This document shows, one piece after another, positions 19,725 through 38,911 of a DNA stretch of 64,000 bases (the first letter of the stretch is position 1; each line of letters starts with the position of its first letter). The notes beneath the pieces were generated by a model, which did no database searches, was not told where the DNA came from, and was given only the letters and a program-made list of their open reading frames with translations. Made by a program: the position numbers and the translations under genes. This DNA is from Utricularia gibba (taxonomy: Eukaryota; Plantae; Magnoliophyta): positions 124,001 to 188,000 of the forward strand of contig NEEC01000027.1 in NCBI GenBank assembly GCA_002189035.1, read 5' to 3'.

Positions 19725-21895
19725 ATGGCCTTCTCCGGCTTCCTCCTTCCCGTCATCCTCTTCGGGTGCTTCGCCTTCGGTTCCCCGCCGTGGTAGAGCA
19801 TTCCCTCACTGTGAGTTCACTTTCCCTTTCTGTGTTGAACCCTCTGTTTTTTCCGACAACACTTTTGAACTTTTTCTGAGATTGTGTGTGTGTGTGTGAT
19901 CAGGTGAAAAATCTCACGGTGAATAAGCTGTGCAGAGACCGGGTGATCACCGCCGTGAACGGGAGTCTTCCGGGGCCGACGCTTCGGGTTAAAGAAGGGG
20001 ACACGCTCATCGTGCATGTGCTCAATGCATCGCCTTATAATATTTCCATTCACTGGTATGCGCTTTCAACTGCGGTTACTCTTGCATTGTGTGTGGGCCT
20101 GGTATGATGATGTGGACACTTTTGCATGGTTTATGGGCAGGCATGGCATTTTTCAGCTGTTGAGTGGATGGGCTGATGGGCCGGGATACGTGACGCAGTG
20201 TCCGATCCGTCCCGGGTCCAAGTACACCTACAAGTTCACCATCAAGGGGCAGGAGGGCACCCTGTGGTGGCACGCTCATGTGCAAACTCTGCGCGCCACT
20301 GTCTACGGCGCCCTCATCATCCGCCCCTCATCCGGCCGCTCCTATCCGTTTCCTCACCCCGCCGTGAAGTTCCGATTATCCTCGGTAACGTCACTTCGAG
20401 TCTTGTGAAATTTACTGGTCAAGTTTTGAATGGGGCTCTGTTGCAGGGGAATGGTGGAACGCGAATGTGGTGGATGTGGAGAATCAAGCCCTGGCAACAG
20501 GCGCCGCACCCAACCTTTCGGATGCTTTCACCATCAATGGCCGCCCGGAGATCTTTACCCGTGTTCTTCGGATGGTAATTTCCGTTCAGTCTCCCTGCAA
20601 TTGGTTTCCCTAATCTCGGATCTCGGTTCTGGAACTTGCAATTTTGTGTTGGTTGCAGACACGTTTAATATGAGGGTGCTGATCGGAGAAACCTATCTTC
20701 TCCGAATAATCAACGCTGCACTCAACCACCAACTCTTCTTCACCGTTGCGAACCATCAATTGACCGTCGTTGCGGTTGACGCCGCCTACATCAACCCCTA
20801 CACCACCACCGTCATAACCCTTGCTCCGGGTCAAACCGTCGATGCCCTGCTCACCGCCGATCAAATTCCCGGCCGATACTACATGGCGGCCCGCGCCTAC
20901 GCCAGCGCCCCAGGGTCCCATTTGCCAACACCACCACTACCGGAATCGTGACCTACGTGGGCTTCTCATGGTCGCCGCCTCTTCTCCCCGTACTCCCTGC
21001 GTTCAACGACACGGAGACGGCGAATAGATTCTACACTAATATTACTGGTTTAGTCACCAGCCCGTTTTGGGTCCCGGTGCCCCGGAAAATCGACGAGCAC
21101 ATGTTTATCACCGTGGGTCTGGGCTGATCCCCTGCGGCGGTAACCGGGGAAACTCGTGCGCAGGTCTGTTGGGGCAACGATTCGCTGCGTCGATGAACAA
21201 TGCTTCGTTCCAGTTGCCGAATAGAATCTCGATGCTGGAGGCTTTCTTCAGAAACGAAGGAGGCGTTTACACTTCCGACTTTCCGAATGATCCTCCGGTT
21301 CAATTCGATTACACTAACCCGAACAACAGCTTGAACCAGGCTCTGCTCTTCACTTCCAAATCCACTAAGGTCAGTCATGGTTGATTGGTATTTCCTTGTT
21401 CTACGGTGTGTCGAAACCGGGTCGACGGTTTTCTACAGGTGGTGAAGGTGAAGTTCGGCGCAACGATTCAGATCGTGATGCAGAACACAGCCTTGGTCGG
21501 GGTGGAGAATCATCCCATTCACATACACGGATTCAATTTCCATGTTATGGCGCAAGGTTTTGGGAACTACGACGCGGCGGTTGACCCCGGAAGTTCAACT
21601 TCCTCAACCCACAGATGCGGAACACCATAGCGGTTCCAGTGGGCGGCTGGGCCGTGGTCAGATTCACGGCCAACAATCCCGGTGAGCCGCTGTATTCCAT
21701 TTCATTCCATTCCGCCTGAAAACATTGGGTGACTGAGTTGGTGTTTGGAAATCGGTTTCAGGCGTGTGGTTCATGCATTGCCATTTGGACGTGCACTTGG
21801 CCTGGGGACTGGCCACGGCCTTCGCGGTGGAAAATGGGCCGACGGCGTCAACGACGTTACCGCCGCCGCCGCCGGATTTCCCCAAGTGCTATTAG
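19725..21895 (+). CDS. LAC: Laccase (LAC7-like multicopper oxidase); six apparent 1-bp deletions
   Basis: Signal peptide and all four Cu motifs (HWHG split by an intron, [24 protein letters not shown]); ends PPDFPKCY*. Frame switches at 19783-6, 20357-60, 20544-6, 20913-5, 21121-3 and 21585-90. No nonsense codon remains once these are corrected. Confidence 0.9.
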
Positions 21896-22197
21896 GGATT
21901 TTGGTCCATTCTTTGTCGTTTCCTAATTCGTATACAGCAACCACACGATTGGATTTGAATTGACAATAATCTGTTTTTTCGCAATCATTAGCTTGTTGAA
22001 TATTTATTTATTTAATAAGGGGTAGGGGCCGGGGCCAACGGCTAACCTGTACGGCACGTATGGCAATGCCGTTGAACAAATAATGCTACTTGATCATTTT
22101 TATGACCTGATAAGTGGGTCCCAAATCTGCCAAAGCTTCCTTCTTCTTCTACTCCCACCCGTACAAATCCCTCCAAAGTCCAAAATCACCGCCGCCC

Positions 22198-23250
22198 ATG
22201 CCTGCGGCAACGCCTGCAACGGCACCGCCCCCATTTCTCTTCTTCAGCCACCTGTAGGGTTCTGCGTCGTATGGCCGTGGCCGTGGAGGCGGAGTCTAGG
22301 AAGGAGAGTAGCTACAAGAATCAAGCCCTCACCGCCTGGATATGGCCGTCGCGAGCATCTCAATGGCTTGTTGTAACCAGATAGCTTCGCTGGGATCTCT
22401 AACCTCATGGATCAGAAGAAGCTCGATGCCGTGTCCGATGAGGTTCGCTTCGAATTCTCAAATGTAAATTAGGTATTTTCCAATTGCTTGAAATCAAGCG
22501 GCAGAAACGGAATCATCGCCTCTTAGGAAGAGAATGTACCCGTGGTGTTGGATGAAAGCTACTCCGGTAACTATATCGTCGTTTTCGACCGAATCCTCCA
22601 ACATCGACGCCGCATTTTCGGCATCTACAGTCCAATCGAGGCAACGGTACAATTTCCACTTGCCTTGCGCCTTGGCACTTCGCGTCCTCACGTTTTCAGC
22701 CAGGGAGCAGCCTGCTGGTGGCAGGCTACTTTATGTACTCGAGTTCTGTGATCCTCGTGGTCACATTGGGAACAGGTGTCTAGGTCTTCACATCGGATCC
22801 CCTGTCGGGGGAATTCGTTCATACATAGGAGAAGATTCAGATCCATAAATCCAGGAAGATATACGCTTTCAACGAAGGGTATTACCAGCTGTGGGACGAT
22901 GAGCTAAAGAAGTGCATTGATGATCTCAATGACCCTGGTCCTACTCTGCTAGAAACATGGGGGGTCTGGTGGGAGATTTCCCAAAAACCCTGCTGTGCGA
23001 TGGTGGAATCTGTGGGTACCCCAGGGCGGGGAAGAGCGCAAAAATGAGAAGCTTATGCTGCTGTACGAATGTGGAGCAAGCAGGTGGAAAGGATCAGAGG
23101 GTTCTCACAGAGCACTGAGGGAATGTGTTGCTCTAAGTCGAAATCCAGGCGTGTAGATAGAATACCAGATGCAAGCATCGAAGTGTCGAGACTGTGAGTG
23201 CTGAAGTGCAGCTCTTCATGGGCAGCGTGGAAGAGGTGGAGAGGCAGCTT
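22198..23250 (+). pseudogene. CFBP1: Chloroplast fructose-1,6-bisphosphatase (CFBP1/HCEF1) pseudogene
   Basis: Colinear remnants: MAVAV, SISMAC, GISNL, DQKKLDAVSDE, VFSNCLKSSGRNGIIAS*EENVPV..ESYSGNYIVVFD, SSNIDA, IFGIYSP, AGYFMYSSSV, KIYAFNEGYYQLWDD, YSAR..GLVGDF, LLYEC, EQAGGKG, QRVL, LFMGSVEEVE. In-frame TAG at 22524, 22781 and 22826; many multi-codon deletions. Confidence 0.92.
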
Positions 23251-23670
23251 TGTCGAGGTTGTGGATGGATGGATGGCTGGCTGCGGATCGGTTTACATCA
23301 CTGCAAATGGAGAGCAGCTGGTAGGCGGGCATGGGCGAGCTGGTGGTAGAAGAAAGCCACAGAGTCGATGAGAACACCACAAACATACACACACGCATTA
23401 GGAGGAGTAATGAACGAAGGGTACAGTGGAAAAAAATCCCCCAAACAATGAATGTGCTTTGGTTGCTCTTAACAGGACTCATGAAAAAAACAATTTAATT
23501 TTACAAGGGAAAAGTTGTTGGAAGGGGGGGAGTGGGTGAATTCTATATAATCTGGGCGTTTGGCCTCTGGGTAATAACAAACTGGCTGCTGCAGTAATAA
23601 TTGAAATTGTAAGCATTGACGGACGGGCGGGCGAGCGGGACACCCCGGAAGCGGGGAATTCATCTCGTCC

Positions 23671-23694
23671 TCTCTCTCTCTCTCTCTCTCTCTC
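23671..23694. repeat. (TC)12 / GAGA tract upstream of the capping enzyme gene
   Basis: Direct reading. Confidence 0.9.
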
Positions 23695-24676
23695 GGATCC
23701 ACCGCATCAACAACTAAACCTCGCCCAAGCCAAACCTACTTCCAGACCATGCCCAGATTTACCCCTCCCTAGATGACCCCTTTGCTCTTTCCTTCCGTTT
23801 CCCACATTCGTCCCTTGATCCTTTCCTCCGGTGTTGGTTGTTGTCGCCGCTGCTTTCGATTGCGCTGCTCCTTAGGGAACTTACTCATCTGCTGTCGTTG
23901 AACGAACCGCTTCTGCTTCTCTCCCACACCCTGGGAGATCCTGGGGCGCCTTCACCCGCTTATTTATTGCGGAACGGAAATGGCGAGGCAAGCTCGCGGT
24001 TAGCTGCGAGGTTTGTTCTGCTTATTCCAGGATCTAAAGATGGGTTCAAGGAATGAGACTTATGTTGGGGGTTTCTTTTTCCTTTTCATTTTTTTTTTTC
24101 TTGAAGCTCATTGCCTAGTTCATGAGTTTGATTCTATATTGTGCTGTTGTTTGAATTACAGTGAGTCCCTAGGACTGGGTAACTCTCGGTTCTGGAAAGC
24201 GAGTGCCTTTTTTTTGTTTTTGGAAGTTGTGTTATCCTCAAGGCTCTTACTTTTTAGGATGTGAGCCTTCTTATAATTCTTCCCAAGATCGACTCCGTAT
24301 TGAAGGTTCATAGTATTGCGTGAATTTGGAAGGCTCTGACCACTAGGACTACCATATTGCTCTATGAGGTCGTTCTCTTGTTGATCGAATTCTTATAGTC
24401 ACATTTAGGGATTGTTTCCACGCAATGAAGCGTAAAAGAGGGAAGAGTAGAATTATGCGCAGAACTCCGAACTTTTAAATATTAATGGGCACCATCTTCC
24501 GCAATTTACCACTGTTTTATACAGTTTTCATACCATTGATGCCTTTTACAAGGATTACATGCTGTGACCTGGGTACTAATTATGTTCTTTAATTTTCTGA
24601 CATTGGCTATGAACCCACAACATCCTTTTAGGTGGAGCATTGAGGGAATGCTCTTGGGAGAATTCAGGGGACGAGC

Positions 24677-27600
24677 ATGGATTTGAATGCCTCTCCTGAA
24701 CCAGAGGAGGATGAAGTGTTATTACCTGAAACTCTGTCTGAAGAAGATCATTCGCATGAAGAAATACTAACCTACAATGAACATGTGGAGCAGGAATCTG
24801 CCGTCCAGATTTCACGAAGGGTAGCACCTTGTACTATTATTTTGAATCACACACTTGTGTTCCAGTTAGTTTTCTATTTGAGTGAAGGCCATTTTATGCT
24901 AACTTTACAGTTTATAAGACGTGTGTGGTAGACTAGTCTGTGATATTTTTCTTATCATGTACTGTCAATGATGTGTTTTTCACATGCTTCATGCAATTGC
25001 CTCCAGTTATTAGGATAATGAAAATGACTACAATTACCTGTGGTTTTCATTAAAAATCTATTTTCGGTTGTTTCATGCTCATATTATCTTTTTGTTTTCT
25101 TCCTCCCCCTTGTGTCACAGGAGCGGGACGAAAGGACTCAAAGAATGAGGAGACAGCGTCCTGATGAAAGACAATCCTATGAATATTATCCAAATCAACA
25201 GCATAGTGGGTTTCAAGGGAAAAGACAGAAATTTAATAGCAGGCTTCCGCCAGGTACATGAATCCCTACTTCCATTATCCTAGTACGTGTTTGTTGGAGA
25301 ATCATATAGATGTTATTTAATGTGTTTATGCTTTTCTTCTCAAGTATAGGGTTTATCCGTCGAACCTCCTCATTGTCTGTGGCGCCAAAAGTTGCATTGT
25401 CTTTTGATATGATAATATGGACAGTGTTTTCTGTTTATCCCATGTTTTTTAACGGTGTTAGAGTACTTGAACATGTTTAGTATCGATGGTCTTTTATACC
25501 TTTGAATTCTTGTATGCACTGGACACCCCTTTCTGCATTTCCAGGTTGGCTAGACTGCCCTCCGTGTGGACAGGAAATAGGATGCTTGATTCCTTCAAAG
25601 GTGCCTCTGGGGGAATCATTCAATTCTGATGTCCCTCCCGGTAGAAGATACTCTTTCAGGCAGGTTCTCCATCAACACCGAGTTTTCAGTCGAAAGGTGA
25701 GTGGAACCAGTGCCTACGTAAGGGCTGTTGTCCCATTGGCTTTGAATGTGAGGAAATATGAAAGTGCATCTATAAAGCCAGGTCTTTTCTCATGCTGTCT
25801 GGAGTTTTCTACCTGAACATTGTTACACCTAAAGAATGACAATATTTTGTAGGTTGACTCTTTTCAGTGTCTTAGTTGTGATCTTGTCTGTCTCTCAGAG
25901 CTTTTGAGAGTTTATGCTTACATGTGAATTTTTTGGCTTATTAAAAAAAATTAATTTGGAAGGTGAACCATATTTTTGTGATTAAAACCCATAAACTCTT
26001 TTAGCATCTTGAATGTCCTGAGCAGTGATAGTGTTACTACTTAGCCCTTTTGTGCAATTTCCTAATCAAATAGTAATATTAAAATTGCTCAACATTATCA
26101 GATTGGCTTGGTGATTGATCTTACAAATTCAAGTAGATATTATTCTCCAGATGACTGGAAGAAAGAAGGCATTAAGTATGTTAAGGTAATCCATTTGTAA
26201 TCTCTCGCTTCCTATAATGCATCATTTTTTATATGGTATTTTTGTTTAATGGGTGCATGTGTTTCAGATTCCGTGCAGGGGCCGTGATGCAGTGCCTGAA
26301 AATCGTGATGTGAATGCTTTTTGTTATGAGGTATGTGAAATTGTCCATCGCATTATCCTGTGGAACTCATTTATGTATCTTTGTGATAAGGGTGATGTTG
26401 GTTTTATGATAAATCCTTGTCAATTTCATTTTCACAAGTAAACATTTTGCATTGACCTGGGTCTTTCGTTTGTGGTTGGACATTTGTGGGAATAAAATGT
26501 GAAGGAAAATTGAACACTGTATTGCATGCTGTCATCAATGCACAGCATTTTTTTTTCATAAAATTTGCAATGCTCCCTAAGTTCTTTTTTGGTGTCAAGA
26601 CTTTTCCTCATCACCATCATTTTCGGATGAGGAACCTGAAGTTATTCTTTGAACCAGGTCTCCCAATTCCTTTCACGCCATAAACAGCCAAAAAAGTATA
26701 TCCTTGTTCATTGCACTCATGGTCACAATCGTACTGGGTATATGATCGTTCATTATCTCATGCGTACACTGCCTGTATCTGTCACTCAGGTTAGCATCCT
26801 TTATATTAACTAATGACTTGGGCATGCCTGAGATTTTCTCCTCCTGCACAGGCGATAAAAATCTTTTCTGATGCACGGCCTCCAGGGATTTACAAGCCCG
26901 AGTATGTTGATGCATTGTACAATTTTTATCATGAAAGCAAGCCAGATACGTTTGTTTGCCCACTTACCCCAGAATGGAAAAGAACTTCTGTACTTGATCT
27001 GAATGGTGATGCCATTCCAGATGATGATGATGATGAGGATGGATTATCTACGGCTCTGCTAAATGTTGGTGTTTCTTTTCTCCGGTTCTGTCAGAGAGAA
27101 ACAATTTCTCTTTTATCTTTCTTATTTCTTAGTTACAATGTGGTATTGTGATGGGCTGTGCACATTAACCTATGCATATAATTCCTTCAGGAGACACATG
27201 ATTCACAGATGCTCATGACAAACGATGATGTCTTGGGGGATCCAATCCCTAGCGAGCATCAATTGGCGATGCAGCAATTCTGCTATCAATCTATGAAGTT
27301 GCCTCTAGGGGTTGGCGTTTCTCTTCTTTTCTTTTTGTTAGTTTTAATGTGAGCTAACTTTCTTAGCTCATATAATAATTCATTTATCTGTTCTCTGAAA
27401 ACACTTTGCGGTGGATGCGTTCATCTCATGAATGCAATAAGATTTTTTCTAGTACAATGGTAGTTGCTTCATTGTGACATAGTTTTTTTTTATTCATACA
27501 GCACAGGGGATACCAATTTCCTGGCTCTCATCCTGTTTCCCTTAGCAGGTTTGTTGGATCCCCCATAATCTGAAATCAGAATATATACATGTGATTTTGA

Positions 27601-33621: not shown

Positions 33622-36600
33622 ATGCCGCTCACCAGATTCCAGATGAGGAGCGAGTACAGCTTATCCGATCCGGAGCTGTACCGCGCCCCGATAAGGATGA
33701 TCCCGAGGCTTTGCTCGAGGGAGTGGCCATGGCCGGATTGGTCGGCGTGCTTCGCCAGCTGGGAGATCTGGCCGAGTGAGTTCGCATTTCATCCAATTCC
33801 TTCACTGCCTCTCCTCCAAGCATTGTTTTCTACTTGTCAGTATGCACGTGAATCTCTGATTTTCAAGATTTTTTTAGGTTTAGGGTTTCTGTCTACTTAT
33901 GCTTTGGCCGCGATTACATACTGATGTATGTTGTGGCGCTCTTGATGTGAGGACGAGGCACTGATTTTTCATTTGTGCTTCTTCAAGGTTTGCCGCAGAA
34001 ATTTTCCATGATCTGCATGAGCAAGTCATGGTGACTGCTGCAAAGGGGCATGACTTGATGATCCGGGTGCAGGAACTTGAGGCAGTGGTGCCTTCCCTCG
34101 AGAGAGCATTTCTTTTCCAGACGGATCATTCCTCTTTCTTCTACAATCCTGGTTTGTGCATTTTCTGATTCTTACCCACTGAGCTCCTTCAATTGTTTTC
34201 TAGGATAAGCTTTTTCATGACAACCTCATTTTGCCGCTACTTTTTTCATTCATGTGGTTAATATTTTTCTCGCATAGTCTTTCAAAACGTCGACCGTTTC
34301 ATCACAGCTTCTCAGCGAGTTGATGTTCATGCATGCAAGCATTTTCTCATTTTATGATTCAGGTGTTGATTGGCATCCCAATTTTAGAGAAAACAAGAAT
34401 CATGTAGCATATGGTGAGATGCCTAGATTCATTATGAATTCCTATGAAGATTGCAGAGGACCTCCTCGGTTATTTCTTCTAGACAAGTATGATGCATTCT
34501 TCACCAGTTTTTTCTCTGTTGCCCCACCTCTGTTCTTTCCAAAACTATATGATTGCCTTTTAGGTATGACATTGGGGGAGCTGGAGCATGCCTAAAACGT
34601 TACACTGATCCCTCCTTTTTTAAAGTAGAAACAAGGAGCAGTACGGATGGCCTGCCAAATAAGAAGGCCAGAAAACCGAAGGTATGTATGGCAATTGAGA
34701 CTGAGCAATGCACATAATTAAGCAGGGCTGAGTTGGCAAAAATCTGTGTTCATAGACAACTTGCATATGTTGCGATGGCAAACTAAACTACTAATTTCTG
34801 TTGTCAATATGGCTACGTTCCATTAGTTTCCCTTGTGATGCTGCCAATAATCCTTTAGTTGACTTCTTGGTCTCATATCAAGCAGAAACGAGGACCACAT
34901 TGGAATAAGGAAGATACAGCTGTTGTTTTAATGCGCTCCAACCCAAAGTGAGATTGTCTTACTTTTTCTGCATATACCTCTTTTTGTAAGATTTTCTAAG
35001 TAGATGGTCGTGTTATTTTGTTTCACACAGACTCCATCAGCTTTTTCTGGAGGAACCAATTGTTAAAACTGTCAACAAGCCAGCTCGTGTAAAACTGAAA
35101 AGGAGGCTTACTGGGTTTCCATTTGATACAAAATCTGGAAGGAGTTACATGGAAAAGTTATTTGTGACTTCTATTGAGGATGAGATGCTCCGTGGAGTCT
35201 CTAGGGGCTGGCCTCTGAGGTTGCCTACTAATGGTCATGGTGAACTTGATCCTGACATACTTGAAGTGAGATCAGTCAGTCCTCTCAGAAAAAGCAGAGA
35301 GAGAATAAAAAGTCATCCGCATCCAGATGAAGCAGGAACTATGCAGAATGAGCTATTGTATGCTAAGAATGATGTTCTTAGTGATAAAACTTGTCAGGAA
35401 CTCACTTCATATACTGCTATGGACGAGAGTAGTGAAACAGACATACATGTAGATGGTGAAAGAAAACAGGGAAGCAGCGTGATTCACATTCCTCTTGACA
35501 TCACCAGTGGGATGGATGATCATCCTGCCGAACCTTCAGCTGTAGAGTTGGAAGGTAAAACAGACCATCACATGCACTTGACGGATGAGTGGACCTCCTC
35601 ATTCTTTGAGCGGAAAATGTCTGTTGCAAACCATGAAAACTTTTTCTCCCAGCCACCGGATTCTCAGGCTACCACTAGCTTAGGTATGTATGAAGAGGGG
35701 AGCGATGCAACAAGAAATTCTAAGTCTTTGTCTATTGAAGTGAAAAGGATATCAGTCAGGAGTTCATTTACAGAAAGACAAGATGCATTTGCCCTTGAAA
35801 TGATTGATAAAATTTCGGCAGATGAGGTACTAGAATCTTCAACTTCCCATGATAGCCATTTGAGTGGTGCCACACTTAACAGTAACGGGCACAATGTTGA
35901 GCTGCTGGATATGGTCTCGCATAGCAATGATCCTAGGTATAGTTTACCACATTCTGATTCAGGAGAAGTTTCTAGTGAGCCTCAGTCTAAGGGATACACG
36001 TCAAATGAAGTAGCTTCTGTCTTACAGTACACTGAAAAGGGGAGTGGCCTCATCTTGGACCCTTCTAAAAACAGGAGCACTAAAACGCAGTTGCAAGCTA
36101 AGTCTCGCACACTGAACGAATCAAATTCTGTTAATTCACCCAGTGCATTTATAGTTTCTGAGTATAATTCAGTTTCATCAAGCTCTCAGTCACTTCATGA
36201 GGATAAGTACGACCAAGAGGTTGTGAGACCAATGAAGAGCATTTTCTTGTCAAAAACTTGTGATGTTCTTCATCAGAGTTTAGATGATGATGAAGAAAGA
36301 ATTCTTTCCTCTAATACGGAAGCAGGGGCATTTGGTGATGATATTCATCAAGGGTGTTCTGTAACAATACCTAGCAAGGGCACAGAGGCAGGCTGTGATG
36401 ACAGTAATACACAATTACAAGTCTGTATGGGAGAAAGGCAGGAAAATGTGTCTGATTCTGAGGGTTTGGATGCTGTCTCTGCTTCTCAGGATTTATTTCC
36501 CTGCATTCCCGAGGTCTCTGTTGGGAAAGATTCATTGGAATCCTGTTCAACACATTCAGAAATTGAGTCTAACAGTTTCCACAGTAAGCAGATTGACTCC

Positions 36601-38911
36601 GAATTATTGGCACCTGTCGTATATGAAACACTTCATTGTGCACGTGAGATATATACTGGTCAAGATGCCCGTGCTGTTACTGGAGATAACTTTCTCAAAT
36701 CATCCTTCGTTTCTGAAAGTGAACAGTCTCTGAGCAATGGAGAAACGGATGCTATTTTGAGCAAAGATTTTGTGGATTTGGACAAATCAAGTAGTTCCTT
36801 TTGCAGTGCTGTGGATACTAAAGGGATGTCCATTGTATTGGGAAATCATGCCATCGAAGCCAATAGAGATGCCCCAGGTTTTGAAATGAACGAAATTTCA
36901 AGCTCAGCAGATATGGAAATTTCCAGGCATTCTATTAGAGAAAGTATCCTATTGCCCGTTGAACCAGCAGAAATGGCTGAAAATCCTGTTTCTAGATTTT
37001 CAAATTCAAGCCAGGAAGTGCTTGTTGATGATTTTTCTCGTCCTGAAATGAAGCACGTTGAAAATATACCCGAAATACTCAGCAGTTATAGTGGCTATCA
37101 TGCTGATGCTAGTTTCACTGAGGTGAAGACCGAAAATGCAGTTGCTATGAAAGACATTAATGAATTTTCCTGCGGTGAAGCTAATTCCAATAATCTAGGA
37201 TCTGTTGAATCTCCCACTGTCCTGGTTTCTAATCTTGGTCATGTGGCTGAAAACTTATCTAATCATCAGGATGCTTCCTCGAGTGTGCAACCTCAGCAGC
37301 ACTGTTTCTTGGATATAGGCCAGGATTCTTTCCTGCAGCGTGATCACAGTGATGTATGTTATGCTAACCCGTTTTGTCTTAACGAGGGTACTGTGATACA
37401 GGAAAGGAAGAGTATGCCTCCTTACCATCTCGAGCAAAAGACTATGTTTTCAAGTGAAACACTTTGTCCAACTGAAGTGTTGGAAAATCAAGGAAACATG
37501 GTCAATGATGTCCCTGGATATCCGAAGGATGCATCAAATTTCACTCCTCCCCTCCTCGAGGGAGATCTGATCACTTTAAATGAAACACCACCTCTGCCTC
37601 CTTTACCTCCTTTTAAATGGCGTATGGGAAAGCTTCCAAATTTCTCTGTAGGTAGCCGACAGCTAGCAAATGATGAGAGGCCAGTCCCTACAAATGAAGA
37701 GATTAATTGTTCCAAGGACCTAAAGTCTCAACCGAGGTCTCCTGATTCGGAGTCCAGCTTGATTCACACAACATTCCATCACCCACCAGAGTTGGAGAGA
37801 AAGGAGCAGCAGCACCTTTCCCACATTGCTGGCGATGAGGTAGTGAATCAAAAGAAGTTTCTTCCTCGAGAAATCTCTATTCCTGATGCATCTAATGCTG
37901 CATCAGAAGACGGGTGCATTAACCAAAGTTCCTCCATTTTTGAGGCTACATCAAAGAACGCAATTTATCTGACAACGCAAGGGGAAAGTAAAGAGTCCGT
38001 TTCCATTGTAAAGATCAGCTCTTCCGAAAATCATCTTGTATCAGATATGAGATTTGAAGTGGGGAATGCTGAGCAGAGTTCATCTGTAGAGACGGATTTG
38101 GACAAGGATTCAGGCTGTGCAGAGGCCTTCATCCCTGCTGCACCCGGTGACGCTAGATCCGTGACTGAGCATTTGAAACATTCTGAAGATGAATCCGTCT
38201 CTGAAACCAAATCTAAGGAAAAGGCTGAGCAAATTTCTTCAGCTGTGGAGGCTGCTGCCTTGATCCCACGGCCAGAGATGGAAATCAAGAAGCCGAGCAA
38301 TCCCCCGGATGTTGTAAATGAAGATGTATCAGAGGGAGGAATTGCTAAGGAAATTCCTAAAGGCATTCGAGTGCCAAGGTCTCATAAGGCTCTGGTTGAT
38401 GCTGCTTCAGCTCTTGATAGAAGTAAAGTGGGTTTCCTTCATCTCTTTCTAAGGCCAATAAGTTCCCATCTGCATATCTAAACCTTTGATATTCAACATT
38501 ACGTTGCAGCTACGCAAAGTGGTACAGAATGATAGAGCTCAAGCACCAAAGGCGACCGAAAGGGACTCACTCTTGGAGCAAATAAGGACCAAGGTACACC
38601 ACAAACCACATCTCCTGCTTCTCATACCCGTTTACGTGGAGACCATACTTTTTCTGACCGGAGTTGTGTGTGGTGGTAGTCCTTCAATTTGAAACCTGCA
38701 ATGGGATCTAGACCACGAATCCAAGCTCCAAGAACCAATCTGAAAGTTGCTGCGATTCTAGAAAGAGCAAATGCCATCCGTCAGGTGCGCCCATCTTCTC
38801 TCAGTGTCGAATTAGACATACTCGTACTGAATGCAATGGAAACGCGGCTGGCTGCTGCAGGCATTGACAGGTAGCGACGAGGACGAGGAAGAAAGTTGGA
38901 GTGATTCGTGA
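33622..38911 (+). CDS. SCAR: SCAR/WAVE Arp2/3 activator (SCAR2-like); one apparent 1-bp deletion in exon 1
   Basis: SHD: [51 protein letters not shown] and [23 protein letters not shown] motif; WH2/[47 protein letters not shown]. Frame switch at 33686-33689. Confidence 0.93.

Follow-up and report, generated by a model that had tools for sequence, protein, structure and literature searches.

When a Calvin-cycle gene is found in pieces, the question is whether the plant that carries it has given up photosynthesis, has shed a redundant copy, or has been wrongly assembled at that point. The stretch of DNA analyzed here (64 kb in all, referred to as the window) raises this question at 22198-23250, where a gene for a chloroplast FBPase (cpFBPase) lies broken on the forward strand. 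An earlier note on this DNA had left two readings side by side, a duplicate undergoing fractionation with deletion-biased genome shrinkage or the loss of a core photosynthetic gene in a heterotrophic lineage. Our analysis favors, with a probability of about 0.85, the reading that this relic is the leftover of a duplicated cpFBPase gene that was eroded after another copy kept the function.

Identity and lesion map of the FBPase relic

A tblastn search with about 110 full-length plant cpFBPases (more than 100 full-length angiosperm proteins, collected in a search seeded with a partial Brassica model) revealed a single FBPase locus in the window, at 22124-23244 and in all three frames; no second FBPase-like sequence was detected with these queries in the 64 kb. 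Likewise, cpFBPase peptides were recognizable in all three frames when 22100-23400 was translated. Two stop-free pieces, 22829-22945 (E 2e-12) and 22527-22640 (E 6e-6), matched the chloroplast FBPases of pea and spinach (PDB 1d9q/1dbz/1spi), and the Pfam matches of stop-free pieces of 28-61 aa to FBPase and FBPase_C were sub-threshold, as is expected from their short length. Sequence homology to chloroplast FBPase I (pea 1D9Q/1DBZ, spinach 1SPI) extends along the whole relic, which keeps traces of the plastid-type regulatory insertion (IEAT and a DNA relic of CVVNVCQ) but has no open frame, no PLDG, and none of the three regulatory cysteines. Identity reached only about 64% even in the best block, compared with 86-99% among working angiosperm cpFBPases. 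In a tree of 28 angiosperm cpFBPases, for which the relic was read with X at the breaks, it was placed near the Lamiales part on a branch of 2.28 changes per site (median 0.089), a length that points to lost or relaxed constraint. We assign 22198-23262 (+), with high confidence, to a non-functional, unprocessed pseudogene of the redox-regulated chloroplast FBPase (cpFBPase I), whose Arabidopsis counterpart we take to be CFBP1/HCEF1.

Lesions were mapped against the cpFBPase of Erythranthe guttata (locus L001) using frameshift-tolerant protein-to-DNA alignments and whole-gene DNA alignments. The Erythranthe gene has four exons, separated by three phase-0 introns of 315, 95, and 85 nt after residues 145, 220, and 389. 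The corresponding parts of the relic are:

22198..22442, + strand: exon 1 relic (transit peptide and N-terminal part), from the alignments; ATG at 22198 retained
22443..22472, + strand: intron 1 relic, 30 nt, GT..AG kept, at the Erythranthe phase-0 position (315 nt there)
22473..22646, + strand: exon 2 relic; TAG at 22524; PLDG, AVSTGS, and NDECLAD (with the first redox Cys) deleted
22647..22699, + strand: collapsed intron 2 and 5' end of exon 3, from the DNA alignment; donor GT at 22647 kept
22700..23157, + strand: exon 3 relic; TAGs at 22781 and 22826; PSGKP, APMSFI, and GSDG deleted; several frameshifts
23158..23208, + strand: probable intron 3 relic with uncertain boundaries, a poorly aligned part between the EIQ.. 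and ..QLFMGS blocks
23209..23262, + strand: exon 4 relic (QLFMGSVEEVER...), from the alignments; ancestral stop codon lost

The frame started by the retained ATG ends at a TAG at 22255, and the exon 1 relic, besides being frameshifted, has lost LLKQE..ELT, SLVQR, and GVQGAVNIQGE. The three in-frame TAGs that the earlier note had reported were found at 22524, 22781, and 22826, which with 22255 makes four TAG stops in total. Both ends of the intron 1 relic still resemble Erythranthe intron 1, intron 2 is largely missing, as are seven codons at the start of exon 3, and the exon 3 relic aligns poorly past about 23117. A functional class I FBPase has an uninterrupted reading frame of about 410 aa; the relic has four TAGs and a coding sequence scattered over three frames. 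In the metal-binding motif DPLDGSSN, PLDG was found to be replaced by 4 unrelated nt, leaving VVFD..SSNIDA. In the three-cysteine regulatory loop (NDEC ... CVVNVC), NDECLAD is deleted and the DNA of CVVNVCQ carries two 1-nt deletions that destroy both Cys codons. The loss of this thioredoxin-regulated loop, as originally described, holds for NDECLAD and for both Cys codons and does not hold for the CVVNVCQ segment itself, a DNA relic of which survives at 22682-22699. The list of about nine missing segments proved essentially correct in the alignments with Erythranthe cpFBPase, and intron 1, given as reduced to about 30 nt, measures exactly 30 nt at 22443-22472, with relics of introns 2 and 3 present too. 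The deletions relative to Erythranthe cpFBPase are:

LLKQEQAGTIDAELT: about 43 nt
SLVQR: 13 nt net
GVQGAVNIQGE: 33 nt
PLDG: 8 nt net
AVSTGS: 16 nt net
NDECLAD and DA: 27 nt
LDSVVQR and most of intron 2: 69+17 nt
PSGKP: 13 nt
APMSFI: 20 nt
GSDG: 12 nt

Coding insertions in the relic are few and small (3, 3, and 8 nt); deletions are far more numerous and larger. With Erythranthe standing in for the ancestor of the relic, apparent microhomology at the junctions amounted to 0-2 nt, an uninformative value. By eye, the 20-nt APMSFI deletion is flanked by two TGTG repeats in the Erythranthe sequence, an arrangement that is only suggestive.

The class of the pseudogene follows from its structure: exon homology is accompanied by an intron 1 relic and an intron 2 donor at the Erythranthe positions and by a probable intron 3 relic, and the lesions are present in reads and in another accession. 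A processed pseudogene, that is, an intronless copy with a poly(A) tract in a new location, is ruled out by the intron relics and by the conserved laccase synteny.

Read support and transcription of the relic

The neighboring genes that enter the comparison with reads are:

21764..21895, + strand: last exon of the neighboring laccase (synteny anchor, outside the relic), with Cu-oxidase domains upstream
23702-24821: mRNA-capping-enzyme gene, first intron 24009-24629 (621 nt, GT..AG), spliced in both RNA runs

Logan contigs of two DNA runs (X1, the probable source, and X4, independent) and of two RNA runs (X3 and X7) were compared with the window over 20900-24900. A contig of X1 covers all of it and differs by no substitution and by 6 one-base indels, at 20912, 21120, 21584 (21584/21585), 21974, 23800, and 23811, none of which lies in 22198-23250. 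At these sites X1, X4, X3, and X7 agree, with a base inserted (G, G, C/A, C, C) or, at 21974, one dropped, and all six are one-base errors of the assembly. Those at 20912, 21120, and 21584 fall where the frame of the laccase gene is broken; this gene is otherwise intact and is spliced and expressed, and because all four runs, RNA included, correct the breaks, these are assembly errors. The lesions of the FBPase relic, in contrast, are genuine, since X1 is identical to the window across 22198-23250 and X4, which represents another accession with about 1% SNPs, carries the same broken structure. The same structure was observed in the RNA runs X3 and X7. The small indels of X4 relative to the window are -3 at 22140, +GGA at 23237, and -4 at 23274. 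The pseudogene call had been staked on raw reads, and two DNA and two RNA runs reproduce the lesions; the contrast drawn earlier between true decay here and 1-bp breaks elsewhere was also confirmed, the 1-nt breaks of the laccase being assembly errors and the FBPase lesions real.

Over 22421-22583, X4 records 12 and 13 hold two forms at about equal depth. One equals the window; the other gains roughly 346 letters near 22471-22476 and contains a gap of 27 letters, which reflects either structural polymorphism within the relic or an artifact of the contig graph.

RNA contigs also define a transcribed unit:

22129..23440, + strand: transcribed unit of the relic, with the strand assumed from the gene because RNA contigs carry no direction

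Contigs of X3 (records 7-9) cover 22129-23360 with 0 differences from the window and without a joint, and contigs of X7 (records 17-18) cover 22177-23014 and 23066-23440, again without a joint inside. Of the words sampled from 21900-23600, 62-73% were present in five RNA runs belonging to two studies. RNA depth was about 0 on either side of the unit (bins 21972-22105 and 23446-23579), introns of the laccase and capping-enzyme genes were spliced out, and the 621-nt intron of the latter gene had zero RNA depth, so that carry-over of genomic DNA is unlikely. The relic gives a low-level, unspliced RNA, and its promoter and 3' end still work. No Rfam family was found in 21000-25000.

Ancestral locus, lineage, and surviving paralogue

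The last exon of the window laccase, which ends 300 nt before the relic, is 78.6% DNA-identical to a lone laccase last exon that precedes Erythranthe cpFBPase by 6 kb and is oriented like it. Because the laccase 3' exon lies upstream in Erythranthe as well, the relic is located at the ancestral cpFBPase locus. PAR1, which lies between the laccase exon and cpFBPase in Erythranthe, is absent at the window locus. The Erythranthe laccase exon itself (L001:3859-3981) has an open 40-aa reading and lies between a Myb gene and PAR1; no other laccase exons were found within 10 kb of it, and it probably represents what Erythranthe has left of the laccase gene that the window carries intact. At L001:10001-14039, Erythranthe has a tandem cpFBPase pair (412 and 417 aa), and the window relic is closer to the first member.

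A single-exon PRA1 gene of the window was used to place the lineage. Its top matches were all from Lamiales, at about 60% identity (Buddleja, Castilleja, Sesamum, Rehmannia, Erythranthe, and Orobanche, with Genlisea at 55%), a pattern that points to a long-branch Lamiales lineage; an exact look-up of the PRA1 frame gave no record. For a member of the Orobanchaceae, 85-90% identity would be expected for PRA1. Genes in the window are densely packed. A bladderwort, most likely Utricularia gibba, would suit both the Lamiales placement and this gene density. One further open frame, at 35149-38481, encodes 1,110 aa of serine-rich, low-complexity sequence with a 15-residue motif that looks SCAR/WAVE-like by eye; it gave no Pfam match and no homologue in a protein search.

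A paralogous copy holding segments that the relic has lost exists in the DNA of the same sample. A 641-nt DNA contig of X1 (record 3) aligns to 22409-22445, 22458-22619, and 22696-22834 (80% likeness), with 52 mismatches in 338 positions relative to the relic (about 15%, or about 85% identity). The 30 letters just before 22409 translate to VQGAVNIQGE. Between 22445 and 22458 the contig has 56 letters where the relic has 12, which would give the paralogue an intron 1 of about 74 nt (about 44 nt more), and at PLDG it has 8 more letters. Between 22619 and 22696, from AVSTGS to QPG, it has 186 letters compared with 76 in the relic (110 nt more), the length needed for an intact end of exon 2, intron 2, and start of exon 3.

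In the RNA run X7, depth at 22642-22909 was 1327-1476 compared with 10.8 for the relic's own contig (more than 100 times), where Logan depth sums all contigs placed and the cpFBPase RNA of another plant may, formally, be present as a contaminant. The ends of these high-depth contigs encode the canonical FVL and PKSG, in place of which the relic has LVV and HKSR; such contigs are present in X7 and absent from X3, a small run. As seen in the 641-nt DNA contig and in short RNA-contig matches only, rather than in a whole reading frame, the paralogue is presumably full-length and functional. No same-lineage paralogue stood out among the approximately 149 FBPase proteins collected. A search with a 39-aa piece yielded only fragmentary gene models, and P0001, the best of them, was rejected as the paralogue, the Logan contig on which it lies (L003) being only 69% DNA-identical.

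The adjoining capping-enzyme gene has a paralogue as well: for exon 24630-24821, a copy of about 81% identity is expressed at equal depth (X7 record 20, X4 record 15); the contig of this paralogue matches 23732-23771 and 24629-24881. Its divergence is close to that of the FBPase pair (roughly 15%), as would fit a duplicated segment of more than one gene. Synteny of the laccase-FBPase-capping enzyme block, which the earlier note had proposed as a check, was recovered on the laccase side, with the laccase exon upstream of Erythranthe cpFBPase, and on the other side a paralogue of the capping enzyme was seen.

Probable duplicate loss and the alternatives

The proposed course of events would begin in a compact genome of the Lamiales, probably that of a bladderwort, with the duplication of a segment or of the whole genome, yielding two cpFBPase copies; we infer that the whole genome was duplicated. 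The other copy would have retained the function, and the copy at the laccase-side locus would have been freed from selection. Both its exons and its introns would then have been eroded, mainly by numerous small deletions (8 to about 110 nt), and point mutations, including those behind the four TAG stops, would have added to the decay. With its metal-binding motif, redox cysteines, and reading frame destroyed, the relic makes no enzyme. Its promoter and 3' end still drive a weak transcript, whose lack of splicing we ascribe to intron relics that are either damaged or of insufficient length. The earlier suggestion of a fractionating duplicate with deletion bias is supported by a paralogue that carries the deleted segments and with deletions that far outnumber and outweigh insertions.

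Such a course has precedents. In U. gibba, three lineage-specific whole-genome duplications have been described, as have extreme fractionation, introns of reduced length, and numerous microdeletions (Ibarra-Laclette et al., 2013, PMC4972453), and in maize fractionation after polyploidy proceeded by short deletions (Woodhouse et al., 2010, PMC2893956). As in these cases, the relic was removed piecemeal by small deletions with the other copy kept, its introns shrank along with its exons, and a neighboring gene is duplicated at similar divergence. A difference lies in the FBPase pair, whose membership in a homeologous block is putative. The relic is a fresh instance of a well-known process, ordinary duplicate-gene loss.

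The other readings were weighed against the same evidence. If the relic were a unitary pseudogene, with no other cpFBPase I copy in a plant that is giving up or has given up photosynthesis, it would resemble the decay of photosynthesis genes in holoparasitic and mycoheterotrophic plants, with which it shares a Calvin-cycle gene dead at its ancestral locus. Here, however, the plant has another copy, whose expression is very strong, and the lineage signal of PRA1 is that of a green Lamiales long branch and not of Orobanchaceae. One of the two original proposals, that a heterotroph has lost a core photosynthetic gene, is contradicted by the paralogous DNA and by the canonical cpFBPase RNA, and we regard a unitary pseudogene as very improbable; the photosynthesis pathway is kept, because the second cpFBPase copy is present and strongly expressed. 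Less improbable, and still unlikely, is a small-scale local duplication, rather than a whole-genome or block event, whose surviving partner now lies elsewhere. The tandem cpFBPase pair at the orthologous Erythranthe locus speaks for it, whereas the window holds the relic as its only FBPase-like sequence and the paralogue of the adjoining capping-enzyme gene, at similar divergence, fits a larger duplication.

Transcription of the relic in at least five RNA runs from two studies (word share 0.62-0.73), with clean ends, would also be expected of a transcribed pseudogene that acts at the RNA level, as a source of small RNAs or as a decoy modulating the working cpFBPase. The low depth, the lack of an Rfam family, and the indel polymorphism of the relic between accessions, which is as expected of neutral DNA, argue against such a role; leaky expression from a promoter that has not yet decayed is the simpler reading, and an RNA-level role appears most unlikely. 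An assembly or sequencing artifact, or a processed retrocopy, is scarcely conceivable. One-nucleotide assembly errors do occur in the window, but none falls within 22198-23250, where two DNA and two RNA runs match it; three intron relics at conserved positions and the upstream laccase synteny with Erythranthe oppose a retrocopy. Loss of a redundant duplicate therefore remains our preferred reading.

For the photosynthetic apparatus, one could speculate that a carnivorous plant, living in part by heterotrophy, has made a directed return to minimal gene dosage, and that transcribed relics might act on their working partners through RNA; this extension is a long shot. The case also tells real decay apart from the 1-nt assembly errors by which neighboring genes are interrupted. 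The relic is a read-verified snapshot of a compact plant genome deleting a redundant gene through at least a dozen small deletions: intron 1 has collapsed to 30 nt from about 74 nt, the promoter has outlasted the coding sequence it served, and indels are still polymorphic among accessions. A dead Calvin-cycle gene is here no sign of a loss of photosynthesis or of heterotrophy, and dead photosynthesis genes in this genome need to be checked for paralogues before a trend is read from them.
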